Of a DNA stretch of 64,000 nucleotides, positions 1,868-25,193 are shown piece after piece. Origin of the DNA: Neoconidiobolus thromboides FSU 785 (taxonomy: Eukaryota > Fungi > Entomophthoromycota); the NCBI GenBank assembly GCA_025603075.1, contig MU626329.1, positions 1 through 64,000 of the forward strand, written 5' to 3'. Within the stretch, counting starts at the first letter, position 1; each line of letters opens with the position of its first letter. A model generated the notes under the pieces. That model had not been told where the DNA came from and ran no database searches. It saw only the letters and a program-made list of their open reading frames with translations. The position numbers and the translations under genes are program-made.

Positions 1868-1869
1868 AT

Positions 1870-2903
1870 TTTAATTTGGACATTTAAACATTTTTGAATT
1901 GATTGATGAACTAATAAAATAAAACAAGATGAAGTAAACCCTAGACAAAGCAAAAAGTAATTGGTCCAAATAACAATATTTATATTAGGATTTGTTTGTA
2001 TTACGCTTAATAAGGTTGCTATCAGATCTGGTGATAAAGATAATATATAGTCTACTAATACGACACTCATTTTAATGACTAATTTGGTTTTTTTAATCTT
2101 AATTGACTAACTATTGATGCCTGAGATTCATCTAAACATAGTTAAAGTATGCCTCTTTGCTTTTTTTGTGTTTCAGTCACTATTTTAATTCCTCTATTGA
2201 TTACAAAATAATATCGTACATCATTGTTAGTGATATCGCTATTAGATTGGTTGTTTCTAAGACGTAAACTTAATCCGTTAAAATAAAACCAAAAACAATA
2301 GAGGAGCCCATTATTCTAAGGTAAGAAAAAGCAATATTGGTATGAAAAAAAACAAACAAGTAATCATGGTGATATTCTTGATGAACTAATGACATAAAAA
2401 AGAAAAGAAAATTTATCATCTTTTCAATATTAATACTTGGTAAACGATAAAAGTTGAATTCTTGCCGTGTATATGAACTAAGTTAACATGTAAATCAGAC
2501 ACTATAATTAATGATGTTGGAGATAGTACTGATAATAAGTAATGATACATTGTATTTACTTGTCTATGTAAATAAATTTTACAGTATTCTATAGTACTTA
2601 AGAAGCCAGATAACTCAACAGAAATAATAATGGTAGTGCTTACTACACTAAAATTTAAAGGATAGTATCAAGTTGGATTGGATACTTATAGCTTACTATC
2701 GACTGTTATGTTGTTTTCAGAAATCATTCCACGTAAATGATGATTACATAGAAAATAATATTGTTAAACGTTAACATTGGTGTTAATATTAATTCTAAAT
2801 TGTTTTTTAGTGATGATTCAATTGGGATTATACTAATTATCAATAGGCTTATTAATAGAGAAATTACTGATATCGTCAAATAAATAATGAATTCTATATT
2901 CAT
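1870..2903 (-). pseudogene. Clade A 7TM receptor pseudogene
   Basis: ORF 2724..2951 gives TM1-2 (NIEFIIYLTIS...NNLEL). ORF 1783..2070 gives TM6-7 (LSPDLI...CLGFTSSCFILLVHQSIQ). The middle is frameshifted and the 3' end abuts a MITE. Confidence 0.85.
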
Positions 2904-2995
2904 TGCTATCATAAAGTTACAAGCATTGTTTTTGAAACTAATCTCATTCATTTATCAATGTTCTAATTAATTATGAGGGTTAGTTTTTTTATTCA

Positions 2996-3173
2996 TATAA
3001 CAATATAGGCAATTGATATAGACGGCAATAAAGTAGACTTTTATCAGATAGTCGATTTTGATTATATCTAATAATGAAGAGGATTCGAAATGCTTGATTT
3101 TGGCAAATCAAGATTAGCTATCTAATAAGGGTCTACTTTATTATCACCTATATCAATTGGCTATATTGTTATA
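2996..3173. repeat. Foldback element with ~55-bp imperfect inverted repeats
   Basis: TATAACAATATAGGCAATTGATATAG...AATAAAGTAGAC..TTATCAGATAG is mirrored by CTATCTAATAAGGGTCTACTTTATT...CTATATCAATTGGCTATATTGTTATA. Confidence 0.8.
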
Positions 3174-4301
3174 GTATCCTTTTAAATTAATTTAGGTCGT
3201 AAAAAAATTATGAACTGGTTTTTTATTGTATAATTGTAGCCTAAAATATGAGAATTCTTTGTTTTTAAAAATGCAAAGCCCTTAAGTTCTTATATAAAAA
3301 AGCAGTGGTTAAAAAGGAATGTAAGCTTCTATCTTTGAAATTTGGAATTTGGCTTATCAATTGCTCAAACAAGTTCATTTTCATATGAAACTCCTATTTA
3401 ACAAAAAACAGATATAGTATAGATAAGTTAGGTTTTCAAAGTCTTTAAAAAAATCAACATAATCTATTTGTTTAAAGACTAGATAAAAAGAGAGATATTT
3501 TTACATCCAAAAGCAGCTTATATTTTAACTTAACATCACTATAAAAGTATTGGCTAGAATCCTTTATATTTTGAAAGAATTCCAAAACCTTGAGTGATTT
3601 ATTAACAACAAATTGATGAATGTATCATAGGAGAGGAAAGAAACGTCATAAAATGAGCATTTTTTTCAATCTTCTTTCATCTAATCAGATTTTTGTTTAT
3701 TTGAAATTGCCAACCTAATCAACCCTTACTCCGCAGATAAAGAGCACACTGAATTAGCTACATTTCCTTCTACAATGGAAACGCTGACTAAAGTTTAGAT
3801 AAAGAAAATAGAACGTTGAAATTCAGTAACGAGTTTTATGATAAAGATGATCCTTTAAAAAATAATGGTAATACCAGAATGGATGTGATCCCGTTTGCCA
3901 TGTATGATAGCACACTCTTTAAAAAAATAAATAGTTATGAAATTATTAGCACTTATATTAATGACAAATAAAATGAAAGAATAGCGAGAGACAGACAAAG
4001 TAGCTAAAAAATAACCTATAAATTATTAAGTTCGTAGCCTCAAGATATTAAGTAAAAAATGGTATGTAATTTATGGGAGGTAATAATGGCCGATGATGAA
4101 ACTATTGAAATGATTCTAACATGATATTGATGATAGTAGTACCATATCAATACTAAATAAAAAGAAAAAATTGTATTGAGAAGGTCGTATCGTTGATATA
4201 ATTAAGCTATTTTTTGAGGAAAGATTACTATAAAACTTGTTTTTTTAAGGGTATATCCCAAGTATTTTACTTGCAAAAATAAACTTAATTAAAATGAGTT
4301 A

Positions 4302-4448
4302 ATACATACTTCCATTGATGGATGGGCTCCAATAAGTGAGATTTTCCTTCCAGTAAGCTTCTACTTAATAAAAGACAGATTCAAAAAGAGCCAATTGCTT
4401 TTATTTTGCAAAATGGTACCACTAATATATGTTAGTGGTGAGAATTAA
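4302..4448 (+). mobile_element. Possible hAT transposase remnant
   Basis: Reads IHTSIDGWAPISEIFLPVSFYLIKDRFKKSQLLLFCKMVPLIYVSGEN*. The DGW and SGEN motifs have hAT-like spacing. Confidence 0.4.
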
Positions 4449-4775
4449 AGGTAATATGTATATATGAATATCTTACCTGGAAAGCTGCAAAGCTTTTGTA
4501 AATGATCCAAACATCAGCCTAAAATATAAAAGCTTAAGAAAATAGATACACATAACTTAGATTTTTAAATATTTTTGAGAAATCATCTAACAAATGGATA
4601 ATAGATGAAAAAAAGTTAATGTATCTTTAGTAAAAAGAACTGTATGTAGATGCTAATGGGGAATAAGTAAACAATGTAAAAGTGTGTGAAAACCTACAAC
4701 TAAGTGAATAAAAATGAGGATTGATTTTTACAAAAGGACATGTGTTTATGTAAATAAGCGAATAATAGATCAATA

Positions 4776-5867
4776 TCAATGAGTCAATTTTAATGAGTTC
4801 AAAAAATATCTTTGAATAGGTTGATGGATCAATAAGATAAAACATGACGAGGTAAACCCTAAGCATAACACCAAGCAGTTGGAATAAAAAGCAATATGCA
4901 TAAAGTTCATCTCGGCAAAATTTAATATACCTATTATTAGATCTGGTAATAAACATAGTATATAGCTTATGACTATTACACTCATTTTTACAACCAGTTT
5001 GATTTTTTTAAACTTTAACTGGTCAGCTGTCAATAGATGAGATTCATTTATTTCTAGTTGAAGCATACTTTCTTGATTTTGTTGCGTTAATGCTAGCCTA
5101 TTTGATTTCCTATTAATTATGAATTTATATTGTGTGTTATTATCATTCTTATTATTCAGTTGATAACTATTGAAATAAAAATTAGAGTTTGTAGCAGTAA
5201 CATTAGACGTAATAACGGGGTTCATTATTTTAAAGTAAGCAAGGGTGATATTTATATAACAGAAACATATTGTAACTAAACATATTAAGATTCTCAAAGT
5301 GTAAATGCAGCAGTGAAATATAAGATAAGTCATATTGTTTTTTTCAATATTGGCACTCAATCCACAATAAAAGTTGGCTTCGTACCATGAATATGAATTA
5401 TAATAACCATGCAGGCTAGATAATACAAGTGATAATATAAATGATAGCACTGATAATAGATAATATTTTATTGGTATTGTTCGCTTAAACAAGCAAATTT
5501 TACTGTATCTTACAAAACTTAATAACGCAACTAGGTCAATGGAAGTACCAATGGTAGTAGCTACTATGCTGAGATTTAAAGTACAATACCAAACTGGATC
5601 GGATAGTAATAGCTCATTGTTGAAATTTATAACATTATACTCAAGCGCTATTATGTCAAATATAACATATATGTATAGAATGGTATCAGTGATTGTTATT
5701 ATTAGTATTAATATTGACTCTAAATTGTTTTTTATAGTCAGTTTAGTTATAATTATACTAGTTATCAATAAGTTTATCGATAACGAAACTACTGATATGA
5801 TTAAATAAATTATACGTTCTATGTTCATTGTTATAAAGACAATGTTCAATTTTTCTATTATCTCCAT
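4776..5867 (-). CDS. Class A-like 7TM receptor, clade A
   Basis: Intronless, 363 aa, 7 hydrophobic segments; WYC, LLSFVRY, FYC, LRIL..FCY, CLLPD, LLIHQPIQ. Confidence 0.9.
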   Translation of the reverse strand: MEIIEKLNIVFITMNIERIIYLIISVVSLSINLLITSIIITKLTIKNNLESILILIITITDTILYIYVIFDIIALEYNVINFNNELLLSDPVWYCTLNLSIVATTIGTSIDLVALLSFVRYSKICLFKRTIPIKYYLLSVLSFILSLVLSSLHGYYNSYSWYEANFYCGLSANIEKNNMTYLIFHCCIYTLRILICLVTICFCYINITLAYFKIMNPVITSNVTATNSNFYFNSYQLNNKNDNNTQYKFIINRKSNRLALTQQNQESMLQLEINESHLLTADQLKFKKIKLVVKMSVIVISYILCLLPDLIIGILNFAEMNFMHIAFYSNCLVLCLGFTSSCFILLIHQPIQRYFLNSLKLTH

Positions 5868-6092
5868 TTATCAATGCTTCAACTTAGTCATGCAATTTGA
5901 AATTATTATCTAAAAACTAATTAATTCCAGAGAGGGTTTACTGGTAGATTAGTATCGCATTTTGGCTGATATGCATATATTCCCTTTTATTATGGCTAAC
6001 AAGACACTTGGGGCTTTCGCATTTCAAAAGGGTAAAATACTAAAAAGTCAATTTGAATTAGGAATTATTACTAAAATATTATGATTTTATAT

Positions 6093-6193
6093 GGGGGTGT
6101 TTTTTTTTTTACTTCATTACTTTTTCCATCTTTTAAGCGTTATTTGAGCGGAAAATTTGCTAGTAAAACTCTTAAACACAAAAATACATCACC
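6093..6193 (-). mobile_element. MITE copy
   Basis: Reverse orientation; ATAT on both sides. Confidence 0.85.
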
Positions 6194-6531
6194 ATATCCT
6201 TAAATGAGGTAAAAAGCCTTTAAGTGCTTTATTAACATGTAAAGTAAAAAATTAATTAACATAAAGAAGAAAGCTCAAAAATGATAGCAAGTTTCTGCCC
6301 ATACTACACATCATTGCTCGAAGTAAGTTTTACATAAACTTGTTTTCCACGTAACTTTCATAAAGGAGTATAAAGTTTTACAAAATAATTTTCAAGTGTT
6401 ATTAAAAAAGTAAGAATAGGTGTTTATTTGGAAATCAAATAAAATGACATCTATTCTTATATATAACATGAGTTTGGATAAGAGTTTATTAGCAACATAA
6501 AAGCATCGATTGGGTTTTAAAGTCAATATAC

Positions 6532-6626
6532 GAGGATATATTTTTTTACTTAAGGATCTTACTAACAATCTTTCCGCTCAAATAGCGTTTAAAAAATAGA
6601 AAAAGTAATGAAACTAAAATATCCTC
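6532..6626 (+). mobile_element. MITE copy
   Basis: GAGGAT...ATCCTC; flanks ATAC/ATAT. Confidence 0.8.
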
Positions 6627-7113
6627 ATATAATAGTAAGAGGAGTTAATAAGCTAAACAATCATGCTGATGCTTCAAAGGGCTATAGTAAGGCTTTAATG
6701 AAAAATCATATCAGTCATAATCCGTTTTAAAATAAATATATTTACAAAATTGACATCTTTTATCTTAATAGCTGATAAGATGAAAGCAGCAAAAGAGAAA
6801 TATAGGATAGCCGAAAACTAAACCAATGATTTTGGAGTTTGTGACTTTGATATAAGAAAGAAATATGAAAGAACATATAATTTTAGTGATTGGATATTAG
6901 CTAATAATATTATTTATATAATGGTTTGTACAGTGATTTGTGCTTAATACTGACGATAATGGTATCAAGGTAGAAATAACAAGAAAGTAAATAAAAAGTA
7001 AACATAAAAAGTTAAGATAATATAATTTTATTATCTCAGCAGAAAAACAACTCATTCTAATAAATAAACAAAATTTACTTGTTACTCAAATAAGAAAATA
7101 GTAGTATTAAACT

Positions 7114-8172
7114 TTAATGACTAAATTTCAAGCATTTGAAGAAACACTTTTGAATCGGTTGATGGATCAATAATATAAAGCATGAGGAGGTAAACCCTAA
7201 ACATAGTAAAAAACAATTAGAATAAAAACTAGTATGTATATCATAGTTTGTCTCTGTTAAACTTAATAAAGTTACTGTTAAATCCGGTAATAAACTTAAC
7301 ATGTAAAATGTTACTACCAGGCCTATCTTTAAGGCTACTTTAATCTTTTCTAATCTTAATCGACTAGTTGTTAGTGGCTGGAATTCATTTAGATATATTG
7401 GAAGGATGGTGCCTTGGTTTTTTTGTGTTGTCATTGTTACCTTTATTTCGCGATTAACTACAATATCATATTGCACGTTATTATTATCGCTATTGCTATT
7501 AAACCGACTGCTATTAATAAATAAATTTGGTTTTGTAGTGTTGTCATCAAAGACAATAGAAGGGTTTAATATTCTAAAATAGGCAACAGCAATACTAAAA
7601 TAACAAAAGCAAATAACGAAAAAGCAGGGTAAAATTCTAAATGAATAAACTGAATAAAAAAATACAAAATAAATTGTATTGTCCTTCTGAATATCAATAC
7701 TTGGTAAGCAATAAAAATTCACCTTATCCCATGAATAAGAATTATGATAGCTAAATAAACTAGACAATACAAGCGACAACACAATCGATATTGCCATTAA
7801 TAAATGACATCTCATCGGCGCTATTTCTTTAAATAAACAAATTTTTACGTATCTTATAATTCCTAATAAAGCAGATAACTCAATGGAGGTAACAATAGTA
7901 GTGGATATAAGACTAAAATTTAAGACACAATACCAAGTTGGGTTGGATATGAGTAGCTCATTATCAACTGCAATTATGTTATATTCAACCATTGCTAGGT
8001 GTGAAATGACAGTTAAATAAAAAATAATATCGTTTATAGCTATTGTTGAAATCATTACCAATTCTAAATTATTTTTTAGTCTTAATTTAGCTAGTATTAT
8101 ACTGATTATTGATATGTTTATTAGTATTGAAATCGTTGAGACTATAAAATAAGTTATATATTCTATGTTCAT
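7114..8172 (-). CDS. Class A-like 7TM receptor, clade A
   Basis: 352 aa; same motifs (WYC, GIIRY, FYC, LLPD, LLIHQPIQ). Confidence 0.9.
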   Translation of the reverse strand: MNIEYITYFIVSTISILINISIISIILAKLRLKNNLELVMISTIAINDIIFYLTVISHLAMVEYNIIAVDNELLISNPTWYCVLNFSLISTTIVTSIELSALLGIIRYVKICLFKEIAPMRCHLLMAISIVLSLVLSSLFSYHNSYSWDKVNFYCLPSIDIQKDNTIYFVFFYSVYSFRILPCFFVICFCYFSIAVAYFRILNPSIVFDDNTTKPNLFINSSRFNSNSDNNNVQYDIVVNREIKVTMTTQKNQGTILPIYLNEFQPLTTSRLRLEKIKVALKIGLVVTFYMLSLLPDLTVTLLSLTETNYDIHTSFYSNCFLLCLGFTSSCFILLIHQPIQKCFFKCLKFSH

Positions 8173-9222
8173 TATTATTGTAAAAGTTAAAATTAATTAA
8201 AATTGCTACACTTTTCATTTATAAACTGTCTCGAATTATTGTATTCTCTTATTCACTTAGTCAGTCTTACTTTCGTATTTTGCTCCTTTGAGTGGTTTCC
8301 TCTTACCCTTATTGCTTTACCTTTTGATGTTTTTTGCATGAATAAAAAGTTATCATAATGGGTAAAAGCCGAAAAAATGTTTCAAATTGATAATACTCTT
8401 TAAAACTATAATTAAAAAGAAATTTTAGGCTATGTAAAACTTTGATTTTCTTATATTGGAAATATCGCTAAATAATTATATGATTTTATATTCTCAAGAA
8501 AGTTCAAATGGCTATTGATATATAGAAGCTGAAAGGACTATAAATTCAACGAAGAACAAGGGTTAAAAAGGATGACTTCCTACTATCATTGCTTATTATT
8601 AACCCAGTGTGGTTCCGACAAATACATTTTTCCTTGCAGGTTTCATTAAAAAGGATAAAATTTATATGAACTAGCTTTTTGAATACCAGTAAAAAAGCAT
8701 GGGAGTTTATTGTTTAAAAGCTAAAGTATACAGCTATTTTTACAAACAGAGTTAGTTTAAATAGAGACAGCAACAGAGGAATCAACTAGGATTTAAACCC
8801 AATATTAGTGTTAAAATAATTAACAAATGGATGAAGAGGATGCTCTAAAAAATAACGATGAAATTGGAACGAAAAGTCGCTATCAGTGATGTCACGCTTT
8901 TAAAACAAACATGGTTATAGAAGTGTATTTTTTAGTAGCTAAAATGAAGTTAACCAGAGAGAAAGGATAAAATACCCAGAAAATTAATCAATGTGTATGA
9001 AGTTTGTGACTTTAACATAACTAGTAAAAATAAGAACATGTGGATTTAAAATAATTTGATAGTGGTTGGCAGCACTCTAGTAGAATTGTTTGTGATATGA
9101 CATTGGTAATAATGCCATTACGGAAAAAAACAATAGTATTTTTTTTTTAATTGTTTCAGAAAAAATCTTATTGAAAGGCTTTAGTCAAGTAAAAAAAAAC
9201 AATAAAGGTTAACAGTAATACT

Positions 9223-10275
9223 TTATTTTAATTTCAAACATTTAAAGAAACACTTTTGAATAGGCCGATGGATTAATAAGATAAAACAAGAAGAAGTAAA
9301 CCCTAAGCATAAAATAAAACAGTTTGAGTAAAAGGTAGTTTGCATATTGAAATTCGTCTTTGTTAAACTTAATAATGTTATTGTTACATCTGGCAATAAG
9401 CATACTATATAACATACTATTATCAAGCTTATTTTCAAGATTAACATAACTTTTTTCAACCTTAATTGATTGACTGTTGGTGACTGAGATTCACTTGAAT
9501 TTATTTGAGTGATGCTTCCCTGTTTTTGCGATTCTACCATCGACTTGTTGCTTTCTCCATTAATTGTTAGTTTATATTGTATAAGACCACTACCCTCATT
9601 ATTAAGTTGATAGTTGTTAATGCGTGAATTTGAATCTATTGCTGTAGTGTTAAGAACAATCGAAGGGTTCATTATTCTAAAATATGCAATCATAATATTT
9701 GAATAACAAAAGCAGACGATGAGTAGACAAATCAAAACTCTTAGTGAGTAGATAGTGTAAAATAATGTAAAATAAGTTGTATTATCTTTCTCAACGTCAA
9801 TACTTGGTACACAATAATAGTCTAATTCGTACCACGAATAAGAGTTGTAATAACTGTGGAAACCAGATAATATAAGCGATAATGCCACAGATATTAATAC
9901 ACATATATAATAACGCATTGGTTTTACTTGTTTAAATAAACAGATTTTATTGTATCTTATAATACTCAATAAAGCAGCTAATTCAATAGAAGTAACAACG
10001 GTTGTGACTATCAGGCTAAAGTCCAAAGCACAATACCAAGTTGGACTAGATACTAGTAGCCCATTGTTAACTGAAATCATTTGAAACTCGACTCCTATTA
10101 TATGTGAGATGGCTACTATGGAATAAATAATGTCATTGATGGCGATTATTGATATTATTATTAGTTCTAAATTGTTTCTTAATTTTATTTTAAACAAGAT
10201 TATACTGCCTATTAACAAGTTTATTACAATAGATATTATAGATATTATTAAATAAACAATATATTCTGTTCTCAT
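9223..10275 (-). CDS. Class A-like 7TM receptor, clade A
   Basis: 350 aa; AINDI, WYC, SIIRY, YYC, CLLPD, LLIHRPIQ. Confidence 0.9.
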   Translation of the reverse strand: MRTEYIVYLIISIISIVINLLIGSIILFKIKLRNNLELIIISIIAINDIIYSIVAISHIIGVEFQMISVNNGLLVSSPTWYCALDFSLIVTTVVTSIELAALLSIIRYNKICLFKQVKPMRYYICVLISVALSLILSGFHSYYNSYSWYELDYYCVPSIDVEKDNTTYFTLFYTIYSLRVLICLLIVCFCYSNIMIAYFRIMNPSIVLNTTAIDSNSRINNYQLNNEGSGLIQYKLTINGESNKSMVESQKQGSITQINSSESQSPTVNQLRLKKVMLILKISLIIVCYIVCLLPDVTITLLSLTKTNFNMQTTFYSNCFILCLGFTSSCFILLIHRPIQKCFFKCLKLK

Positions 10276-10912
10276 TATTGTTTTAAAATAAAAACCCTAA
10301 AAAACCATTGTTTTGTTTATCATTTAAAAGTGCCTTATATTATCTATTCAAAATCTTGATTAATTTGTGTCGATCCTTTTATATTATAGTTGCTTTAGTT
10401 TTTTTGTGACTTATTTAATGGCTCATTTTAATAAAACTATTTTAAAAGTTGGTTCAAGTATTAATGGTCGATATTTAAAAAATCAGGTGTGTAAGTAATT
10501 CAACTATAAAAATTATTGTTAAAAAAGCCATAGAAGAGCTGCAACAGCCGTACTAATCATCACTGAAATTACTATTACTCTTTTATATCCTTAGAGATGA
10601 AAAACTTAAATAATTTGTTGAAAAATAAGTAAAAAAGAAATTAACAAAGAAGCGAGAGGGTTAGAATCTAGTATTTTTCTTTTTTTTTGCCACTTATTAC
10701 CAGTATAGCGTTTTTATCTTGATTTAGAATGTGAAATATTGTTGGTTAGTATGATTGAATCAAGCTTACTATTCACTGTCTGTATAAAAATTCTAGTAAA
10801 CTCAGCAAGCTTAACACTCAAATTGGTAAACAAATTATATATAGTGAAAAATTTAAAAAGTTAACAAAGTTAAAATGGAAGTGCTATATAATCATAGTCT
10901 AAGTGAATGTAT

Positions 10913-11010
10913 GGGAATATATTTTTGTGTTCAAGAATTTTATTAACAATCCTTCTACTCAAATAGTGCTCAAAAGATGAAAAAGTAATGAAATCAAAAA
11001 AAACATCCAC
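10913..11010 (+). mobile_element. MITE copy
   Basis: GTAT on both sides. Confidence 0.85.
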
Positions 11011-11747
11011 GTATAGTTAATAGGGTAGAGGAATTTTGTTTTAAAGCCAAACGAGAGAAAAACATGCTTTATTATAATTAAAAATAGATTTTATAGGATT
11101 TAGGGACATCATTGAGAGATTAAATATATGTAAAGTCAAGACAAATCAGTAAATGAACTAATAAACTAGATAATTAAAATAGTATCTAAGGAGTAACAAT
11201 GGGGCCAATAATAAAAAGTAGCTGTCTGTAGTAGAACACTTTTGAAAACACTCATCACAGATTAACATCACTTTTACTACTGATTAAAAAAGGCGGAAAA
11301 AGATAATGGATTACATGACTGAAAATCAAAATCATGAGTTCTAAAGTCTATGACATCAAGATAATAGACAAGTACTTAAAAGCTATAGTATCTAATGAGA
11401 CTAATGAGTTTCATAAACACTTTAATTAAAAGATTTATGATGGAATATTTATAGCAATAATAGAATTAAATACGAAAATAAAGAAATGAGACAAATTAGC
11501 ACCGTTAAATAATATTTCTCTTCTGTAACAAAAGCCTAAATTTAAAATAAACTATTGTCTTACAATAATTGTCTATACCTTGAAATAACATATTTCTCGC
11601 TCCTATTTTGCTTTTTTTCATAGTTCTTACTTTGCCTTTATTCGGGCCTTTTATAAGTAAAGCACCTTGAGTGCTTAATCTTTCAAGGATTAGAAAAAGC
11701 ATAAATAAATAAGGGAAAATAGAGATTAAAAATAGAGATGAAATAAT

Positions 11748-12809
11748 TTAAATTTTTAGTTTTAAACATTTAAAAAAAGAATTCTGAATCGGTTGATGGA
11801 TCAATAAAATAAAACAAGAGGAAGTGAGTCCTAAACAGAGTAAAAAGCAATTGGAATAAAATGAAGTGTTCATATTAAAATCTGTTTGGGTCAAACTTAA
11901 CAATGTTATAGTTACGTCTGGCAATAAGCATAGCATATAACTTATCATTACTACACTAATTTTCAAGATCAATTTGACTTTTTTTAACCTTAATTGACTG
12001 ACTGTTAGTGGTTGAAATTCATTTGGGTTTAGGTGAATTATGTTTTCCGATCTTTCGTGGATTAGTGTTCGTCTACCTGAAGTATTACAATTTATGATAT
12101 TAAATCCTATGTTATTGGTATTACATTCATTATGTTTATGTTTCTTGTGAAATAAGTTGGGGTTACCACAGGTAGCATTAACGATAACTGAGGAATTAAT
12201 GTGTTTAAAATAGGCAAACATAATGTTCGAATAACAAAAACAGATGGTAAACAAACACATTAAAATTCTTAGTGAATAAATCAAATAAAAAAATATATAG
12301 TAAGGCGTATTATTCTTCTCAACACTGATACTTGGTACACAATAAAAATCTGATTTGGACCATGAATAAGAGTTGTAATAACTATGTAAACTTGATAATA
12401 TAATAGATAAAATCACCAATAATATTATAAAGGTATAATAATTATAGGAATCTATTTTTTTAAATAAACAAATTTTGTTATATCTAATAATACTTAACAA
12501 AGCAACTAGTTCAATAGATGTAACTACAGTAGTAATCACAGCACTGAAATTGAAAGCACAATAACAAGTTGTAACTGGCAACAATAATTCATTATTAAAT
12601 TGAATTAAGTCATATTCAATTATTATTATATGGGAGATGGCTAGTAGATAGTAGATAATATCATTTATAATGATTAACAAAACAATTATTAGATCTAGCT
12701 TGTTTTTTGGTTTTAACTTGAATACGATTATACTACCTATTAATAAGTTTATTCCTATTGAAATAAGAGATATCAATAAATAAACAACATATTCGATTTC
12801 CATTGTCAC
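11748..12809 (-). CDS. Class A-like 7TM receptor, clade A
   Basis: 353 aa; CYC, SIIRY, FYC, CLLPD, LLIHQPIQ. Confidence 0.9.
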   Translation of the reverse strand: MTMEIEYVVYLLISLISIGINLLIGSIIVFKLKPKNKLDLIIVLLIIINDIIYYLLAISHIIIIEYDLIQFNNELLLPVTTCYCAFNFSAVITTVVTSIELVALLSIIRYNKICLFKKIDSYNYYTFIILLVILSIILSSLHSYYNSYSWSKSDFYCVPSISVEKNNTPYYIFFYLIYSLRILMCLFTICFCYSNIMFAYFKHINSSVIVNATCGNPNLFHKKHKHNECNTNNIGFNIINCNTSGRRTLIHERSENIIHLNPNEFQPLTVSQLRLKKVKLILKISVVMISYMLCLLPDVTITLLSLTQTDFNMNTSFYSNCFLLCLGLTSSCFILLIHQPIQNSFFKCLKLKI

Positions 12810-16237: not shown

Positions 16238-16336
16238 GAAGATATTTTTTTTGATTTCATCACTTTTTGCATTTTTCAAGTGCTATTTGAATGGAAAGAT
16301 TGGTAGTAAAGCTCTTGAACAAAAAAATACAGCTCC
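16238..16336 (-). mobile_element. MITE copy
   Basis: Reverse orientation, diverged; flanks ATAT/ATGT. Confidence 0.75.
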
Positions 16337-16924
16337 ATGTATTAAAAGACTTCCCCGTTAAACAAAAGGGGATGAGGAATCTAACATTACAATAAAAAAG
16401 GTTGCTACAAGCAATATCAATTTATTTTAGTTTGAAACAAATAAAGAGGTGTTTTCGAATCAGCTGATGGATTAGCAGAATAAAACATAAAGAAGTAAGA
16501 GCTAAACATAATATCAAACAAAGTGAAAAATAATGCAGAAACTTAGATTTGTGTCTGCCAAGCACAATAAAGTTACTATCACGTCTGGGAGCAAATATAA
16601 TATATACTTTATAATCACTACGCTTGTTTTAAAATTAATTCAACTTTTTTTAACCTCCACTGTGTAACTTTTGGTGGTTTAGACATGTTGAAATTTAGAT
16701 GAAGAATGGCGTGTTGCTTTTGCTACAACATCAGTAACCTACTCGCTTGTTTGCTTTTAAATATCATAGTTTACCCCACTGATATTATTACCATTATTAA
16801 ACTGTAAGTTATTATAACATGAATTTGAGTTGTGATAATTAGGTATATTACATAATACAAGTGATATTATAATGGATAATTTTATTAGCATACAATAATA
16901 TATTGATGTTACTTCTTTTTTTAC

Positions 16925-18470
16925 AGAAGTACGTATTTATGGTAGTGTTTATTTCGAAAGAAAGAAAAAATCTACTCAACAAGATATATTAGAGATAATA
17001 AAGAAAGGTAAAAGCTTTAGCATCAGTTGAAGCCTTTGGGTCAAAACGCCCTACTTCAAGAATTCTTCTATCAATTTTGGATTCATTCAATCTAAAAGTC
17101 ATTAAAAAGGGTTTACTAATAATAAAATGTTTCCGTTTGAAAATAAACAAAGCCATAAGAACTGAATCACACTTCTTTCTAAATGTCACTTTATAACAAA
17201 GTCTATTGATAATACAAACTACAGGTATTGTAGTAAGAGGGAGTTAGGGGTTGGAACAAAGTAGAAGCAAATTAGGAATGAAAGATGAGTTGTTGCCGCA
17301 CATGATGTCATCACTATTAATAATATTATCTACAATTTAAGAGACAGTTAGCTAAATTCTCTGGATGTAGGCGCAGTTGAAGAAATGGTGATCGGAACAA
17401 TCATTAAAATCCATACATTATAGGCAGGATGGAGAGGCAATATCATCATATGAAGCTACTTAGTAATATGTATAGAAGCCATCTTCTATGGTTCTCTAGA
17501 GCGCTAGGCCTAATCTGGGATTGGGAGTCTCGTTGTTAAAATTATATACCCCTCGAGATAAGATGGTATTTTTAGGAAGTCTTAAGACATTATAGGATCC
17601 TTTATTGACACGGACAATAAAGCCATTCAAGAATTTATAATCGTTTTTTTTGCAATTCTACACAATGTCTGATAACTTTTAATTAAAGCCTTGGATCATG
17701 AGGAAAGAATTCTGGATCCAGGTGGCGAATATAAACAGTTAGTGGTGCTTTTAGGAGCCTTTTTAATGGGTACTGCATGAGACCATAAGCCAACAAAACC
17801 TTATCACTAAAGTGCTTCAAAGCTATCTCCGAAGTATCTGACCCAGGATTTCTGAATCAACAAGTAATTCATGAATCAAGGAGAAAGAAACCCAAAGCCT
17901 TTATCGGTTTTGAATGTTACCAGTTTTCTAAATAAGATTTTAAATCGTTTATTATTCCGAATCAAGGAAGTGGCTACTTTTTTGATTTTTTTAATGTCTG
18001 GAAGGACAAGAAGGCAAATGTGAAGACAGTACCACAAAACCGAAAGAGTGTCATTGTTGATAAGCAGTACTCTTTCTTTTAATGAAACATTTTTAATATT
18101 CCAGCTTACTAATTTTGATTCAAAGCAGGAAATACAAGAGTTCATCATAAAGCTGTCTTTAATACCTAAGTGAGAAATATATATATCTAAGTGACCTATA
18201 TCATCTCCTTGATCACATACTGGTACATTATAGTCAAGATTTGGGTTAAAGTTTAGAGCCTGGGATTTATCTGTGTTTTTACTGCCCCTAATAGCTTTAG
18301 TAAATGATCGCCAGGTAAGTTCATTCAAACCAGAGTCACTTTAGAGCTCAGATCAATATATCTGTCCCCTGCAAAAGTGGCTACTTTAAACACCGAAGTT
18401 TGTGACAGAAGATGGAAGCCTTTTAAGTTATAATTAAGATAGCTAAAGATATGGTTTGTACTAATTATCC
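16925..18470 (-). mobile_element. 5'-truncated, decayed non-LTR retrotransposon (L1/Tx1-like ORF2 3' half)
   Basis: KVATFAGD is a degenerate Y/FADD. It is followed by KLVSWNIKNVSLKERVLLINN..LSVLWY...KTDKGFGFLSP and the zinc-knuckle remnant PKC..DHHFFNCAYIQRI* near 17350-17430. Confidence 0.8.
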
Positions 18471-18491
18471 ATATGAAAATTTTTAGTATAT

Positions 18492-18589
18492 GGGAGTGTT
18501 TTTTTGGTTTCATTATTTTTTCCATTTTTTAAGCGCTATTCGAGTGGAAAATTTATTAGTAAAGTTCTTAAGCACAAAAATGCATCCCC
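18492..18589 (-). mobile_element. MITE copy inserted in the receptor TM3 RY codons
   Basis: Flanks ATAT/ATAC; excision restores ACA AGG TAT ACT AAA (T-R-Y-T-K). Confidence 0.85.
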
Positions 18590-19894
18590 ATACCTTGTAA
18601 TCTTAATAAAGCAGTTAACTCGATAGTAATAATGAAGTTGTTTATTAAACTAAAGTTTGGAAGGCAATATCAATATGAATTAGATAATTATAGCTTTTCA
18701 TTAACTACAGTTACGCCATAATCAGCTAATGCTAAATATAATACAGTCGCAGGATAGAGAATGGTACCGTTGGCAGTTATTAATATTTTGATTAGTCCCA
18801 TTTGTTTTTAATTTTGTTTTAAAGATAGATATGGTAATTATTAGTAGACTTGTTAGTAGCAAAATTGTTGAGATTACCAAATAAACTCCATCTTCTATGT
18901 TGTTTACTATCATTATAAAATTAAATATAGTTTTCATTCATAGATGTTCTAAATTAATTGTGCTATTAGATATAATTATATAAATGTTTTTTTAAATTTA
19001 TTGAGGCTAAAAATAAATTAGCTCCGAAAATGCTCCACTAATGGGTTAGTCCCGTAAATTAACTGACTTGCATGTTTATTCCTCCGTATTGTAGCTAATA
19101 AAGTACTTGGTGCTTCGGCATTTATTTTTTTAAACCAAATGAATCGTGGTGTTTATTCATTATAAAAAGTTGGGCTTCAGTATTTTAAAAAATAAGGGCT
19201 CAATTAAAGAGTTAATTCATAATATACTATCACTAAGATATTATTGGTTCTATATCCTTAAATAAAGTAAAACTTTTAAGTGCTTTACCATATTACACAA
19301 AAAGAGGATTAGCACAAAGAAGGTTCAAAAAGAATATTACCTTTACATTTTTATCATTTACCACTTGCCCAATTGTAGCCTAGATAAATGTGTTTTCCCT
19401 ATAGAGTTTTTATCAAAAAAGATAAAATTTATACGAAATAACCTTTTAAATATTACTAAAAAGGCATAAAAATCTGATTGTTTAAAGCAATCAAGTAGGG
19501 CAGCTATTGTTACAAATAAAGTGAGTCAAAATAAGAATAAATTGGTAATACAAAGGCATTTATCGAGATTCAAAGTCAACAAAAAGTAGAAACATTTAAC
19601 AAACTGGATGATAAAGATTTTACTTTAGATAATAATGGCGAGGTTGGGACGAAATGAGTCTGTTACTAATAATACACTATTTGTAAAATTACGAGTGCCC
19701 ATACTGGTAACTAGTAAGTAGGAAAGCTTAACAAATGTACTATAAAATAATTAGGTAATGAAATGATGTACTATTTAGTTTATGGCTCTACAATGTTGAA
19801 GTAATATGAAAGTCTAGAAGATTTAGCGAGACAACTGCAACTGATAATATAATTATCGAAGTGATATATGATACGATGCTTAAAATGATGGTAT

Positions 19895-19987
19895 GGGGAT
19901 GTATTTTTGTGTTTAAGAATTTTGTTAACAAGTTTTCTGCTCAAATAGCGCTTAAAAGACAAAGTGATGAAATCAAAAAAAACTTTC
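19895..19987 (+). mobile_element. MITE copy
   Basis: GGGGATGTATTTTTGTG start; flanks GTAT/ATAT. Confidence 0.85.
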
Positions 19988-20150
19988 ATATTGTAACCAA
20001 AAATGTCAAAAAGTCATATAAAAGTTTGTATCTAAAAAATTATTATAATTAGATTTATTATCCTTGTAAAAGTAAGAGGAAAAAACCCTCTAATTAATCA
20101 ATGGAAGACTTTGTACTATTTAAATAAAAAAACAACAGTGTTAATCTTAA

Positions 20151-21206
20151 CTATTTAATTTTGAACATTTTAAAAAAAGAATCTTGGATCGGTTGATGTA
20201 TTAATAGAATAAAACATGCAGAAGTAAGCCCTAAGCATAATACTAAACAGTCAGAATAAAAAGTAGTATTCTTATTAAATTTTGGGTTTACTAAACACAG
20301 AAACGTTATTATTACATCCGGTAACAAACATAACATATAACTTATTAATATCACACTTATTTTTAAAGCTAATTTGGCTTTTTTTAAGCTTAACTGAGTA
20401 GCTGTCGACTGAGATTTGTTTGGGTTTTCTGAGAATACAGTTTCTTGCTTTTTTTGTGTGATTGCTAGCTTGTCAACTCTAACATTGTTTGTAAAGTTAG
20501 ATTGTAAATTGCTCTTATTGCTATTATCATTATCAAATTGATAATCAGTAAAACGTGTATTTAAACCTGTGGAATAATTATTAAGAATGATAGAAGGGTC
20601 CATTATTTTAAAATATGCAAGAGTGATCTTTGAATAACAAAAACATATGATGATTAAAGAAAGTAAAATTCTTAACGTATAAATAGAAAAGTAGAATAGA
20701 AAATAGTCCCTGTTGTTATTCTCAATACTGATACTTGGTAAACAAAAAAAGTCTAGCTCGTGTATTGAATATGAGTTATAATAACTATGTAAACCAGACA
20801 ATATAAGTGATAACATAATGGATAACACAACTACTATGTAATAATTCATTGATGTTACTTCTTTATATAAGCATATCTTACTGTACCTTATAATACTTAA
20901 TAATGCAGATAACTCAATGGAAGTAATCTCAGTAGTAACTACAGCGCTGAAATTAAAAGCACAATACCAAGCAGGAACTGATAGCGATGGTTTATTATCG
21001 AATTGAATCAAGTCATGTTTGATTATGATTATATGCGAAATGGTTAATAGATAAAAAACAATATCATTTATAGTAATAAATAAAATGATTATTAGATCTA
21101 ACTTATTCTTTAACCTCAGTTTGAATACTATTATACCACTTATTAATAAGTTCATCACTATCGAAATGAGAGATATCAACAAATAAATAGTGTGTTCGGC
21201 TTTCAT
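20151..21206 (-). CDS. Class A-like 7TM receptor, clade A
   Basis: 351 aa; WYC, SIIRY, FFC, CLLPD, LLIHQPIQ. Confidence 0.9.
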   Translation of the reverse strand: MKAEHTIYLLISLISIVMNLLISGIIVFKLRLKNKLDLIIILFITINDIVFYLLTISHIIIIKHDLIQFDNKPSLSVPAWYCAFNFSAVVTTEITSIELSALLSIIRYSKICLYKEVTSMNYYIVVVLSIMLSLILSGLHSYYNSYSIHELDFFCLPSISIENNNRDYFLFYFSIYTLRILLSLIIICFCYSKITLAYFKIMDPSIILNNYSTGLNTRFTDYQFDNDNSNKSNLQSNFTNNVRVDKLAITQKKQETVFSENPNKSQSTATQLSLKKAKLALKISVILISYMLCLLPDVIITFLCLVNPKFNKNTTFYSDCLVLCLGLTSACFILLIHQPIQDSFFKMFKIK

Positions 21207-22590
21207 TATTATTATGAGTGATCAATCAGTATTTTCTTGTTTTTATATTCTTTTTAATTCTTTTTGATTCTTTTGCATTAATTAATTCGCTAAAGATAGT
21301 ATAAACTAAGGTTTTAATAAATTCTCACTTTAGTATAATATAAATTTAAATTGAGATATTAGATAAATTCCTTTATGCTATTAATATTTACATACATGAA
21401 CGGAGGTAAATTGCCCATTATAATAGAGGGTGTTTTTAATCACTAATATAGTTGTGTTTTTTTAAATTATTCAGCCAAATTTTTCCTTTATTTGGAAAAG
21501 GCTTCTTTAGGTATCTCAAATAAAGGAAAATTTTGGTTGAATAATTTAAAGTATAGTTGTGAAGAGCAAAGCTATTCTATTTGAGTTTAACAGAATGCAC
21601 TTGTTGCTTTAGAACTTAAGGTTTTCAAAAAAGAACAAAATTATTCTCAACTAAAAGTAACTTTTTACTGCAGCTAATAATATGCCTATTTTTATATGCA
21701 TAAACATCCGTAGCATAAATGGACCTATCCACTATAATAAATTACAAAATTAGTAAACATACGCCTTTTCTGGAAACATTTGGCATGGTTTATAATAATG
21801 AAAGCATAGTTTTTATGTTGTTTTGTTGAAATATCAAATTTAATTAACAGATAAATATGAGCACCAAATAGTAGGTTATCAATAGATAAAAATAGTCTTT
21901 TTTAAAAAAAGGTTATATTTTCCCTACTGGTTGGAACTTAATTTCAGTTTTATTACAACTCCTTATTTAGTTCCTTAAAATCCTTTATTGTTTGTTTCTA
22001 CTGGAATCTGGGTCTTACATAGAATATTTTATAGTGTAAAATTCAAAGCTATTGACTTGTCACCCCTATTTTGGTCCTGGTTATTTAATGAAAAACATTA
22101 GCTTTTTGTGGAAGTAGGTATGCTTTCATTGTTGGTTCTCAAACTAAATATAGTCCTAAATAGTTATACAGCCATTTTTTTCTCCCTGAGGTTTTAGGAT
22201 TGACTTTTCTTTACATTCTTTTAGTTATGTTTTTTAGAGACAAATCACTGCTTTGCTTTTTAAGCATAATACGTTTTAAAAACAAGTGTATCTTCAAATT
22301 ACATTATTTGATTTAATTGAACTGTTATTTTATCAGACTAAAGTAAAATAAATTAATATTTCAGTTATATGGTGTGGTTTTTATTTGCTTTTCTTTATCA
22401 TATATTAAAATTTTTGAAATTATTTTTGTAGCTACTGTAATTTTAGATATAATTTAGTATCAATGGCTTTAAAGTAAAAAATACTAAAAAATTAGTATCA
22501 ATAAAGCTGATGTGATAAAACCTTTATATCTCAGGGAAAATATTTAATTTAAATGCTTTAAACAAATAAATAAAATATTTTTTTATTTAA

Positions 22591-23670
22591 TTAAAAGACT
22601 ATAGTATTAAATTTTAGTGATTTAACTTCAAACATATTAAAAACACACTTTTGAATTGGTTGATGAATTAATAGAATAAAACATGAAGAGGTGAGCCCTA
22701 AACACAGTATTAAACAATTAGAATAAACAGCAATATGTATTTCAAATTTTACTTTTGTTGAAATTAATAAATTTATTATCAGATCTGGTATTAAACAGAA
22801 CATGTAACTTATCATTATTAAGCTAATTTTTAACATTAATTTTACTTTTTTTGACTTTAATTGGTTAGCTGTCAATGGCTGAGATTTGGTTGACTTTTGC
22901 TTATAAATAGTTTTTCGGCTTTGTTGAGTTGTCATTAGCCTGTTAGATTCAGTACTGCTTATAAAATTATGTCGAGTGTTATTGCTATTGTTTTTAGCAG
23001 ACTGATAGCTACTAAAGCACAAATTTGAGCCCGTAGCATTCGTATTAGGACTAAAGGAAGGATCCATTATTTTAAGGTAAGCAAGGGTAATATTTGAATA
23101 GCAAAAACAATTGGTCAGTAAGCAGAGCAAAATCCTCAATGAGTAAATGAAATAATAAAATATACAATAAGGTACATTATTCTTTTCGATATCAATGGTT
23201 GGTAAATAATAGAAATTGAATTCATACCATGAATACGAACCATAATAGCTATGTAGACTTGATAGTACAATTGATGTTACAGCAGATAATGCTATGAATA
23301 TATAGCAGTACATTGGTGAGATTTCCCTAAATAAACAAACTTTACTGTATCTAATAATGCTTAATAAGGTAACTAATTCAATGGAAGTAGAAATGATACT
23401 AGCTACTAGGCTAAAATTCAGGGCAGGATACCAAATTGGGTTAGATAGCTGTAACTTGTTGTCAAATGATATTATACTATACTCAGTTAAGATTATATGT
23501 AATATGGCGATTAAATAGAAAATAATATCAACAAAGGTAATTGTTGATATTATTAACAAATCTGGGTTGTTTTTTAGACTTAGCCTATATAAGATTACAC
23601 TCAGTATCATTAAGTTTATCAGTAACGAAACTGTCGAGATTATCAAATAGATTATGTTTTCAGTGATCAT
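22591..23670 (-). CDS. Class A-like 7TM receptor, clade A (both disulfide Cys lost)
   Basis: 359 aa intact ORF; WYP replaces WYC and FYY replaces FYC. Confidence 0.85.
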   Translation of the reverse strand: MITENIIYLIISTVSLLINLMILSVILYRLSLKNNPDLLIISTITFVDIIFYLIAILHIILTEYSIISFDNKLQLSNPIWYPALNFSLVASIISTSIELVTLLSIIRYSKVCLFREISPMYCYIFIALSAVTSIVLSSLHSYYGSYSWYEFNFYYLPTIDIEKNNVPYCIFYYFIYSLRILLCLLTNCFCYSNITLAYLKIMDPSFSPNTNATGSNLCFSSYQSAKNNSNNTRHNFISSTESNRLMTTQQSRKTIYKQKSTKSQPLTANQLKSKKVKLMLKISLIMISYMFCLIPDLIINLLISTKVKFEIHIAVYSNCLILCLGLTSSCFILLIHQPIQKCVFNMFEVKSLKFNTIVF

Positions 23671-24629
23671 TGTTATTTTGAACTTAAAAACGAGCTTTAT
23701 TTCATTTTTTATATTATTTATTAATGTTTTAAAAATTATGCTATTTGAACTTATTATTCAAAAGTACCCTTTTAAATTAATTCAGATTGTAAAAAATTAT
23801 TATGGCTTTATATTCTTAAGAGAAAATGACTTCTTGTGCGCTATTAATGCATGAAATTAAGGTAAATTATTAACGCAAACAACAACAAATGCCAAAAAGG
23901 ATAACACTTTTTAAATTTTACTATTTATTGTTAGTCAGTTATGATCTAGACAAACCCACTTTCTTTTCAACTTTTGAAGAATGAAAGAACTAGTTTACAT
24001 GAACCAATTTTCAAGTAATGTTTAAAAAGGATTGCTATCTTATATATTTAAAAGTTGAACGAAAAAGGAAAACCTCATAAACAAATTTGGCTTAAATTTG
24101 GTTTATTTTTGTTGAATTGTTTATAAAACATTAACCCATTCAAGACCCAAGGTTTCCCTTAAAATAAGGACTTATTAGTACCATGAAGATACTGATTAAT
24201 ATTTGTATTTAAGTCAAGATTTTCGAAATACTAATAATCTAGATGACACCAGCAATATATTAAAACAGAATGGTATGGTTTTGATGAGAAGCGGTATCAC
24301 TATTGATGTGTTTTAAAGATCATTACTTTAGGTGAGCTATTATTTACATTATTAATTAGTAAGTGGAGATACATTCGATACTTTTTAAGTAAACCATTTC
24401 AAGGCCTAAAACTCTTTTGAGGTTTTTAAAAGCAACGAGATGAAAAGAATGGAAGACAAATAATAGAGTAATAAAAAATGAAGTAATAAGTTAGAGGTTT
24501 GTGACTTTAAGTAACTGAATAAATTTAAAGGAGATGTGATCTAAAAACAGTGATTTACAATATTAAACTGATATTATAATATTATACCAAAGAGTAATAG
24601 TAAAAAAAGCTAGTGCTATTAAGGCGATT

Positions 24630-25193
24630 TAGTTATCTTTGACAAAAAAGCCTACATTAAAAGTCTTAATGCAATAATCAAGTAAAACAATACGAAATAA
24701 GCCTTGTTATCTTTGTTGATATCAATATTTGGTAAACGATAAAAGCCTAAATTACACCAAAAATATGAGTCATAATAACAGTGTAAACCAGATAGTATTA
24801 ATCACAATATAACTAATAAAGCCCCAAACAAACAATCATGCGTTGATACCATTTTTTTATAAACAAATTTTATTGTATCTTATGACACTGAATAAAATAG
24901 CTAATTTAACAAAAGTAACGATAGTTATCACTAACTAACATTTGAATGACAATATCAGGCTGGATTGTATACTTGTAACTCTTTATTAGCTATAAATACC
25001 TTATAGTTAGCTAGCATTATATATAATATGACAATAAAATACAAAATGATACCATTGATGAGTACCATCAATATTATTGTTAATTCTAAATTGTTTTTAT
25101 GGTTAGTTTACAAAAAATTATATTTAACAATAACAAGTTTATTAGTAGCGATATTGTTGAGCTCGTTAAATAAGTTATGTGATCTACATTCAT
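24630..25193 (-). pseudogene. Clade A 7TM receptor pseudogene, 3'-truncated
   Basis: Starts MNVDHITYLTSSTISLLINL...NNLEL and degenerates through TM3-TM5. No TM6-7 found. Confidence 0.75.

Follow-up and report, generated by a model that had tools for sequence, protein, structure and literature searches.

Old tandem duplicates of very divergent rhodopsin-family (class A) receptor genes in the entomophthoralean fungus Neoconidiobolus thromboides

Rhodopsin-class GPCRs have been described as 'markedly concentrated in Entomophthoromycotina', and 26 of them were counted in Neoconidiobolus thromboides FSU 785 (PMC12842992; also in the preprint text), a strain for which the same survey lists no Ste2, Ste3 or Git3-type receptors and in which the rhodopsin class is the main GPCR class. 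In Conidiobolus coronatus, 125 GPCRs, mostly class A-like, have been counted (PMC12387763). These rhodopsin-type receptors, proposed as fungal 'class 15' (PMC12842992; PMC12387763), include P0008 (KAI9292293.1), which belongs to the same genome and subphylum as the receptors treated here, and relatives in this genome already carry the name 'family A G protein-coupled receptor-like protein'. No functionally characterised fungal rhodopsin-class receptor was found in the literature on them. A preliminary description of the DNA analysed in this work had taken its receptor array for an undescribed system, a claim overturned by the published expansion, which includes this very strain. As a system the array is of a known type, and expansions like it have been published for this fungal group; one branch of the expansion, here called clade A, has been overlooked by the published counts.

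The window, i.e., the whole stretch of DNA that was analysed, comprises positions 1 to 64,000 of contig MU626329.1 from N. thromboides FSU 785, an insect-pathogenic fungus. Ten paralogous receptor loci lie on its minus strand between positions 1873 and 25193 (Table 1), as identified by tblastn with the intact proteins together with a list of open reading frames (ORFs), and the same-strand tandem layout described earlier, with six intact and four broken copies, is thereby confirmed. The intact copies span 350-363 codons and share 50-57% mutual identity; along the ten loci, each start is followed by the next at 1.5-3.7 kb. A1 is 350 aa long if started from the ATG at 5828, which agrees with the start of the other copies. 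Since the window contains 26% G+C, about 8-9% of random codons would be stops and, thus, six ORFs of 350 codons cannot be attributed to chance. The transposable-element insertion that had been described is borne out in the third pseudogene (psi3) as an insert containing a MITE-like repeat; the rest of the inserted DNA is unique in the window, with only a weak reverse-transcriptase lead to a LINE identity. Moreover, the genes are intronless as previously stated in the sense that their coding regions are uninterrupted, although the A1 mRNA carries an intron in its 3' UTR. Introns in neighbouring genes are likewise found, since the ThiF-like gene is clearly split (its first ORF spans just profile positions 2-107 of 238) and the model of the RRM gene requires one intron, in partial agreement with the 4-7 introns given earlier.

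Table 1. Features of the clade A receptor array in the window.
Feature	Positions	Strand	Details and evidence
psi1 pseudogene, clade A	1873-2951	-	at least 4 frame changes; tblastn frames -3/-2/-1/-3/-2 and ORF list
A1 spliced mRNA	3242-6018	-	contig from RNA run, 2725 nt, depth 71.7, zero mismatches, one joint
A1 intact receptor ORF	4776-5867	-	363 aa; ORF list, tblastn
A2 intact receptor ORF	7114-8172	-	352 aa; protein used for structure model
A3 intact receptor ORF	9223-10275	-	350 aa
A4 intact receptor ORF	11748-12803	-	351 aa from ATG; ORF list begins at GTG, 12809
psi2 pseudogene	14312-15272	-	frameshift near 14550; first ~23 codons unrecognisable; tblastn
psi3 C-terminal part	16425-16936	-	~residue 109 to end; several frame changes; tblastn
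Insertion splitting psi3	16937-18597	.	1.66 kb; at ~residue 105-109, the TM3 RY motif
MITE-like repeat within psi3 insertion	18462-18592		at least 14 copies in window
psi3 N-terminal part	18598-18937	-	TM1 to TM3; ORF list and tblastn
A5 intact receptor ORF	20151-21206	-	351 aa
A6 intact receptor ORF	22591-23670	-	359 aa; both TM3-ECL2 cysteines lost
psi4 truncated pseudogene	24655-25193	-	residues 1-182 only; frame change near 25096; tblastn

The same window contains a neighbouring receptor clade, termed clade B. At least seven intact clade A genes and five clade B genes are present at the two loci examined, and their 12 proteins form the comparison set used below; about a dozen clade A loci were seen. 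In the public annotation, genes of both clades are truncated, fused or missing: the C-terminal 95-aa ORF of psi1 (1783-2070) has been entered as a gene, the models of A2 and A3 are truncated to 292 aa (N-terminally) and 285 aa, respectively, and no gene model is listed at A4. Furthermore, none of the 12 proteins matches any Pfam family at E<=1, and none of them, taken singly, passes the 7tm_1 gathering score, which is the criterion used by the published surveys, unlike the fungal relative P0008, which passes 7tm_1 with 39.7 bits (cut-off, 30.5). Pfam-based surveys therefore miss both clades, the count of 26 for this strain is an underestimate and the proteins are to be filed at the superfamily or clan level, as a divergent subfamily.

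Although single copies escape Pfam, profile comparisons establish their relationship to 7tm_1. HMMER searches with the clade A profile reach 7tm_1 proteins at E 2e-10 to 9e-4 and P0008 at E 2.8e-35, hhalign against five animal 7tm_1 proteins gives 98.8% (E 9e-17) over TM1-TM5, and 7tm_1 clusters rank first in a language-model search. Among 1.84 billion proteins, the profile matches just 26 cluster representatives, the distant ones being Pfam 7tm_1 proteins; clade A itself was found in N. thromboides only, with relatives in the same genome, and no characterised orthologue was found. Clade A and its fungal relatives form one well-supported fungal group apart from animal class A (100/99). The array proteins are thus rhodopsin-family (class A) 7TM receptors, albeit very divergent ones.

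Structure prediction leads to the same family. The AF2 model of A2 (pLDDT 79.8, pTM 0.79) is a predicted class A seven-helix bundle with helix 8 and an ECL2 hairpin, features common to its best structural matches, the animal receptors GALR1, SSTR1/2, 5-HT1A/1E and AT1/AT2 (TM-score by target 0.7-0.8), despite only 11-17% sequence identity. Foldseek returned at least 500 PDB matches at E<=1e-3, with TM-scores by target of up to 0.80, and the top 50 all belong to class A (GALR1, SSTR, 5-HT1E); searches of Swiss-Prot and AFDB clusters agree in placing class A first. TM1, previously placed at about residue 5, indeed starts very early, at residue 2 in the model, and leaves an N-terminal tail that is almost absent. 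This end is predicted to lie outside, in keeping with Lys and Arg contents of 1-4 of 46 residues on the outer side versus 4-9 of 27 on the inner side. It is extremely unlikely that the array belongs to another 7TM family, i.e., Dicty_CAR, Git3/Gpr1, Ste2/Ste3, PTH11 or opsins. The rhodopsin family stands close to that of the cAMP receptors, and Pfam models mistake one for the other around the point where the two separate (PMC3251606); in addition, insect opsins appear among the best Swiss-Prot fold matches. However, no Pfam match to any of those families exists at E<=1, the relative P0008 matches 7tm_1 only and class A receptors occupy all the top ranks of the fold searches. A cAMP receptor is rejected by the invariant R-Y of TM3 in place of N/S-x-Y (criterion of PMC3251606), together with the lack of a Dicty_CAR match at E<=1, and an opsin by position 7.43, which is Leu or Ile in clade A and Ser, Cys or Thr in clade B, so that the Schiff-base Lys for retinal is missing.

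The hallmarks of class A listed in the preliminary description (TM1 Asn, TM2 Asp, the Cys pair, TM3 Arg, TM5 Tyr and TM6 Pro) are all present in the motif table. N1.50, D2.50, R3.50-Y3.51 and P6.50 are invariant in the 12 proteins, C6.47 occurs in 11 of them, and the Cys pair joining TM3 (C3.25) and ECL2 is found in six of seven intact clade A and in all five clade B proteins, the exception being A6, where both cysteines were lost together and replaced by Pro (3.25) and Tyr (ECL2). Clade A also shares S3.39 and Y5.58 with animal class A. Unlike animal receptors, clade A lacks W4.50, P5.50 and an acidic residue at 3.49 (Ile or Val; Ile, Val or Met across the 12 proteins), W6.48 is replaced by Leu (Leu or Ile across the 12 proteins), and an Asp at 6.51, adjoining P6.50, is invariant in both clades. 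NPxxY is gone as well, with S-S/A-x-x-I in clade A and N/S-S/A-x-x-V in clade B, and an L-L-x-H motif specific to these fungal sequences replaces the animal one at the TM7/helix 8 junction. Fungal relatives such as P0008 resemble clade A in N1.50, D2.50, R-Y, P6.50, L-L-x-H after TM7 and a short N-terminus, whereas they have NPxxV/L, so that N7.49 and P7.50 are additional losses of clade A. Since published fungal rhodopsin-family members carry 'NPXXX' instead of NPxxY (PMC3251606), the absence of Y7.53 is a general fungal trait, and NPxxY does not define the fungal branch. A further difference from the relatives is the ICL3 of clade A, of about 65 aa, rich in Asn, Ser and Thr (14-22% Asn) and, as noted before, the most divergent part of the protein (32% identity). 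On the contrary, identity rises to 81% in the inner half of TM3 and to 91% in that of TM7, and these cytoplasmic ends, like helix 8, are strongly conserved.

Because an acidic 3.49, W6.48 and NPxxY are missing in every copy, canonical G-protein activation cannot be assumed. There is hence a real, though minor, chance that these proteins are of class A ancestry and do not act as GPCRs, either using other partners, e.g., via the long, fast-evolving ICL3, or working as non-signalling 7TM proteins (transceptors, scaffolds or membrane organisers); the substitution of L-L-x-H for the animal motif fits such a role. However, R3.50-Y3.51, Y5.58, P6.50, D2.50, N1.50 and helix 8 are strongly constrained, surface conservation is highest at the cytoplasmic ends of TM3 and TM7, the docking region of G proteins and arrestins in class A receptors, and the loss of Y7.53 is not peculiar to clade A.

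The duplicates are old and have remained under purifying selection, with pairwise dS of 1.0-2.2 (saturated) and dN/dS of 0.15-0.33 between array copies. Nucleotide identity between them (64-72%) is restricted to the coding region, terminal branches in the star-like DNA tree measure 0.23-0.54, and no young duplicates occur in the array, all dS values being at least 1. The second pseudogene is sister to A6 (97/95, DNA tree) and A4 groups with A5 (92/95, protein tree), and the two pairs stand in parallel order along the array. As for expression, A1 is transcribed as a spliced mRNA with a 151-nt 5' UTR, the receptor as its longest ORF and a 3' part of about 1.5 kb, in which an intron of 55 nt (4422-4476, GT..AG) with an ACTAAC branch-like site is removed. 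In the single RNA library, A2 and A3 show background-like depth, transcripts of A4, A5 and A6 were not detected, and pseudogene and intergenic stretches reach a depth of 2.6-5.5 versus about 72 for A1; thus, one of the six intact copies is well expressed. Of the outcomes that the preliminary description named as refuting its interpretation (a predicted fold outside class A, silence of the intact copies, characterised orthologues in a non-sensory role), none was observed.

Four dead copies among ten, little or no RNA from five of the six intact ones in that library and the disulfide-free A6 could be taken to mean that the array as a whole is a relic in decay, its intact ORFs being unbroken so far but functionless. 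This is very unlikely, since the dS and dN/dS values speak against it and six ORFs of 350 codons could not have stayed open so long in DNA of 26% G+C without selection. Moreover, pseudogene branches in the DNA tree are visibly longer than those of intact copies, A1 is well expressed and spliced, and the A5-A6 stretch has nearly identical copies in three other DNA data sets.

The array had also been likened to animal olfactory-type chemoreceptor clusters. Same-strand tandem order, single-exon coding regions, a large share of pseudogenes (four of ten) and lineage-specific expansion are shared with vertebrate OR/TAAR and nematode serpentine receptor arrays, and the expression of one in six copies in one condition is like that in such clusters. 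However, young births are absent, no hypervariable pocket is demonstrated and the clade A loci seen number no more than about a dozen. ECL2 is fairly conserved (62% identity), and the outer TM halves of clade A are not significantly more variable than the inner ones (55% versus 62% identity, p = 0.11), unlike those of clade B (40% versus 55%, p = 6e-4). The analogy is therefore weakly supported, and the ECL2 and TM-half contrasts give no demonstration of ligand diversification in clade A.

Taken together, the array probably represents a lineage-restricted clade of class A (proposed fungal 'class 15') receptors whose members would sense ligands and have a cytoplasmic side that is conserved. Clade A may have arisen by old tandem duplications, partly of two-gene blocks, in the Neoconidiobolus lineage, after which six copies would have been retained via purifying selection and four would have decayed by frameshifts, truncation and transposon insertion. 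The products may be plasma-membrane sensors for extracellular small molecules or peptides and, since the N-terminal tail is almost absent, the ligand would have to bind within the helix bundle or beneath the ECL2 hairpin. Inside the cell, all of them would act on the same partner, for which a heterotrimeric G protein is the likeliest candidate, while ligand and timing of expression would differ among copies; with the acidic 3.49, W6.48 and NPxxY gone, activation must differ in detail from that of animal receptors. A bolder and rather improbable extension of this proposal regards clades A and B as belonging to a chemosensory repertoire of fungi that is still hidden and exceeds the published counts, in which Asp 6.51 would serve as a shared acidic pocket anchor and the receptors would, thus, sense cationic cues (host or cuticle amines, basic peptides), with one or a few copies switched on at once. 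A fungus would then have evolved its own olfactory-like system independently, using a class A scaffold whose activation switch has been rewired; host sensing is, at this point, speculation.

The rhodopsin family supplies the principal class of GPCRs in entomophthoralean insect pathogens, and whole subfamilies of it are invisible to Pfam-based surveys. Clade A constitutes a natural experiment in which R3.50-Y3.51, Y5.58, P6.50 and D2.50 have been kept, while NPxxY, W6.48 and an acidic 3.49 have proved dispensable, and A1, the expressed copy, is a concrete candidate for deorphanisation.

Neoconidiobolus thromboides, formerly named Conidiobolus thromboides, is an entomophthoralean fungus (Zoopagomycota) outside Dikarya, and the contig MU626329.1 comprises 97,101 bp; the protein of the ORF 9223–10275 maps to identical coordinates on it. 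In the window, whose G+C content is about 26% throughout, ten paralogous receptor loci (clade A) were delimited by the list of open reading frames (ORFs) and tblastn with the intact proteins, all on the minus strand between 1873 and 25193. Six copies (A1–A6) are intact and encode proteins of 350–363 aa with pairwise identities of 50–57%, and four (psi1–psi4) are pseudogenes; the coordinates, locus counts and lesions of the preliminary description were all correct. Stops represent about 8–9% of random codons at this base composition and, thus, ORFs of 350 codons are not due to chance. The loci examined were those of the window and one further, small locus (L001) on contig MU626259.1, where one copy is intact and the other is broken. 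A second array, clade B, extends from 35713 to 53678 with five intact receptors of 340–348 aa on both strands, which share 23–31% identity with clade A, have no Pfam match and are full-length in the public annotation. Four likely secreted proteins are also encoded beside the receptor arrays.

Receptor loci, neighbouring genes and repeat copies in the window (intact clade A copies from the ORF list and tblastn)
Feature	Coordinates	Strand	Details
psi1	1873–2951	−	at least 4 frame changes
A1	4776–5867	−	intact
A2	7114–8172	−	intact
A3	9223–10275	−	intact
A4	11748–12803	−	intact
psi2	14312–15272	−	frameshift near 14550 and degraded start
psi3	16425–16936 and 18598–18937	−	1.66-kb insert at TM3 R-Y motif, plus frameshifts
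Repeat segment of psi3 insert	18462–18592		
Other repeat copies (examples)	61031–61161; 26592–26689; 25596–25700; 19890–19991		
A5	20151–21206	−	intact
A6	22591–23670	−	intact
psi4	24655–25193	−	ends after residue 182
Clade B receptor	35713–36750	+	
Clade B receptor	38032–39078	+	
Clade B receptor	41188–42216	+	
Clade B receptor	44254–45276	−	
Clade B receptor	52632–53678	−	
DEPKK-repeat protein, likely secreted	47732–48508		broken by 100-N assembly gap, 48086–48185
Thr-rich repeat protein, likely secreted	49257–50789		510 aa; zero Pfam matches
CAP (cysteine-rich secretory) family protein, likely secreted	56230–57162		E 2.4e-11
ML-domain lipid-binding protein, likely secreted	58417–58926		E 3.6e-23

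A short repeat, probably a MITE, that occurs at least 14 times in the window (about 100–130 bp, 74–87% identical) makes up one segment of the psi3 insert. The remainder of the insert has no match in Pfam, and a language-model search gives only a weak lead to RVT_1 (reverse transcriptase), so that a LINE identity was not adopted. RNA depth is very high at 6031–6227, which suggests another repeat.

Clade A is detectable only by profile, profile–profile and fold methods. Single proteins hit no Pfam family even at E ≤ 1, sequence and profile searches of the PDB found nothing, and a word-indexed homologue search returned three matches with a single protein and six with a 23-sequence profile, since this method is too insensitive for low-complexity, AT-coded membrane proteins. 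Nevertheless, four independent lines of evidence agree that these proteins belong to the rhodopsin (class A) family. Firstly, in an exhaustive HMMER search of 1.84 billion proteins, the clade A profile recovered only 26 cluster representatives, the near matches belonging to N. thromboides, Massospora cicadina, Entomophthora muscae and Conidiobolus coronatus, and the far ones being animal rhodopsin-family receptors that are themselves strong matches to Pfam 7tm_1; an N. thromboides relative annotated as a family A G protein-coupled receptor-like protein (KAI9292293.1) is hit by the profile at E 2.8e-35 and itself exceeds the 7tm_1 gathering score. Secondly, when the profile of clade A alone was compared with that of five animal 7tm_1 proteins, the match had a probability of 98.8% (E 9e-17). 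Thirdly, 7tm_1 clusters rank first in a language-model search. Finally, an AlphaFold2 model built from a 28-sequence alignment (pLDDT 79.8, pTM 0.79), superseding a poor one from six sequences (pLDDT 60), displays seven helices, helix 8 (H8) and a hairpin in the second extracellular loop (ECL2), and all its best fold matches are class A receptors, whether among PDB entries, Swiss-Prot models or AFDB clusters. Moreover, the distribution of Lys and Arg obeys the positive-inside rule with an N-out topology.

The motif table bears out the class A hallmarks listed beforehand. In class A numbering, N1.50, D2.50, S3.39, R3.50-Y3.51, Y5.58 and P6.50 are invariant in all copies, while C3.25, its ECL2 counterpart and C6.47 are retained in nearly all. 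TM1 lies almost at the N-terminus, as had been noted, starting at residue 2 in the AlphaFold2 model. The acidic residue at 3.49 (replaced by Ile or Val), W6.48 (by Leu) and NPxxY (by S-S/A-x-x-I) are lost, W4.50 and P5.50 are also missing, and N7.49 is kept in three of the five clade B copies. Specific to clades A and B are Asp at 6.51, which never varies, and a His where TM7 meets H8. A6 lacks both cysteines of the TM3–ECL2 pair, with Pro at 3.25 and Tyr at the ECL2 site, and its pairwise dN/dS values (0.15–0.33) fall in the range of the other pairs; this joint loss indirectly supports that the two residues would pair in the other copies. Membership of another seven-helix family is unlikely: position 7.43 is Leu, so the proteins are not opsins, and TM3 carries R-Y where cAMP receptors have N/S-x-Y (PMC3251606). 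The other fungal GPCR classes were also rejected as the identity of clade A.

Constraint is unevenly distributed along the protein. The Asn-rich third intracellular loop (about 65 aa, 14–22% Asn, dN/dS about 0.5) is indeed the least conserved part, with 32% identity, and the most conserved helices are TM7 (77%) and TM3 (67%), with identity rising to 91% and 81%, respectively, in the cytoplasmic half of each. Outer helix halves vary more than inner ones, significantly in clade B (p = 6e-4) and not in clade A (p = 0.11). Judged from sequence comparison, this pattern is compatible with an intracellular partner that the copies would have in common and with greater variety on the extracellular side. 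It is moderately probable that clade A proteins act as surface receptors with a ligand site in the helix bundle, an output through cytoplasmic TM3, TM7 and H8, and a switch unlike that of animal receptors. The ligand would bind beneath the ECL2 hairpin, since an N-terminal domain is absent, close to an invariant acidic residue at pocket position 6.51, and the signal would leave through the conserved cytoplasmic ends, most probably towards a heterotrimeric G protein. The main rival, that G-protein coupling has been lost and a different partner is used, is less probable.

The array is old. Intact copies show saturated pairwise dS (1.0–2.2) with dN/dS of 0.15–0.33, their DNA similarity (64–72%) is essentially restricted to coding regions, and homology in the flanks never exceeds about 300 bp and thus falls short of 1 kb (E < 1e-10, at least 150 bp). 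The DNA tree is star-like, with terminal branches of 0.23–0.35 in intact copies vs 0.39–0.54 in pseudogenes. It pairs psi2 with A6 (support 97/95), and the protein tree pairs A4 with A5 (92/95), a parallel order that would fit a duplicated two-gene block. In the protein tree, clade A is monophyletic (100/100), its sister group holds clade B together with a Massospora cicadina protein, and all these fungal proteins stand apart from animal receptors. Overall, the tandem copies arose in an ancient burst and were then long retained and slowly lost; this is not an array of rapid turnover.

RNA evidence comes from one public data set of the same organism, used as assembled contigs. A contig of 2725 nt (depth 72) matches 3242–4421 and 4477–6018 with zero mismatches, skipping 55 nt (4422–4476) that are bounded by GT..AG on the minus strand and contain an ACTAAC site. 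Its longest ORF is the A1 receptor and, thus, A1 is made as a spliced mRNA with an intron in the 3' UTR, so that the description of these genes as intronless holds for coding regions and fails for the A1 mRNA. The intron lies about 300 nt past the stop codon, within a 3' region of about 1.5 kb that may be a single UTR or a merged neighbouring transcript. Introns in such positions can target transcripts for nonsense-mediated decay. With contigs placed over 1500–12900, A2 and A3 show patchy cover at depths of 2.6–4.4, the same as psi1 and intergenic DNA, and A4 has zero coverage; A5 and A6 were judged by word share, and none of their sampled words occurs in the RNA run (share 0.00). The reading of clade A as a wholly dead array was rejected as unlikely, given the low dN/dS at such high dS, the longer branches of the pseudogenes and the spliced A1 mRNA. 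Furthermore, 82–97% of the 31-letter words of 20151–23670 (A5–A6) recur in three further DNA data sets that carry the labels of two other organisms; this implies roughly 0.1–0.6% divergence over this stretch and, therefore, an array nearly unchanged in other isolates.

A 2012 paper described rhodopsin-family receptors from early-diverging fungi, namely Blastocladiomycota and Chytridiomycota (PMC3251606). Across 1,357 fungal genomes, a survey found rhodopsin homologues 'markedly concentrated in Entomophthoromycotina' and proposed them as fungal class 15, and its supplement assigns 26 of 33 GPCRs of 'Conidiobolus thromboides FSU 785' to the rhodopsin class and none to Ste2, Ste3 or Git3 (PMC12842992). 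The genome paper of C. coronatus describes 125 GPCRs, mostly class A-like, linked to host range (PMC12387763). Both counts rest on Pfam or CDD matches, and the survey additionally demands seven predicted helices per gene model. In the first 20 kb of the window, public annotation provides only four models for clade A loci (285, 292, 149 and 95 aa), the first three with N-termini cut back to internal Met codons; intact A4 has no model, the psi1 tail (1783–2070) is annotated as a gene, and at L001 (10001–12682) on MU626259.1 two adjacent copies are fused into a 466-aa model. Since clades A and B have no Pfam match and these clade A models are few and short, both are absent from the published counts. 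The observations of the preliminary description are thus confirmed and its interpretation holds in part, as regards class A; the 'undescribed system' does not stand, because the expansion in Entomophthoromycotina is already published (PMC12842992, PMC12387763). What is new is not a system but a hidden, more derived subfamily of these receptors and its genomic layout.
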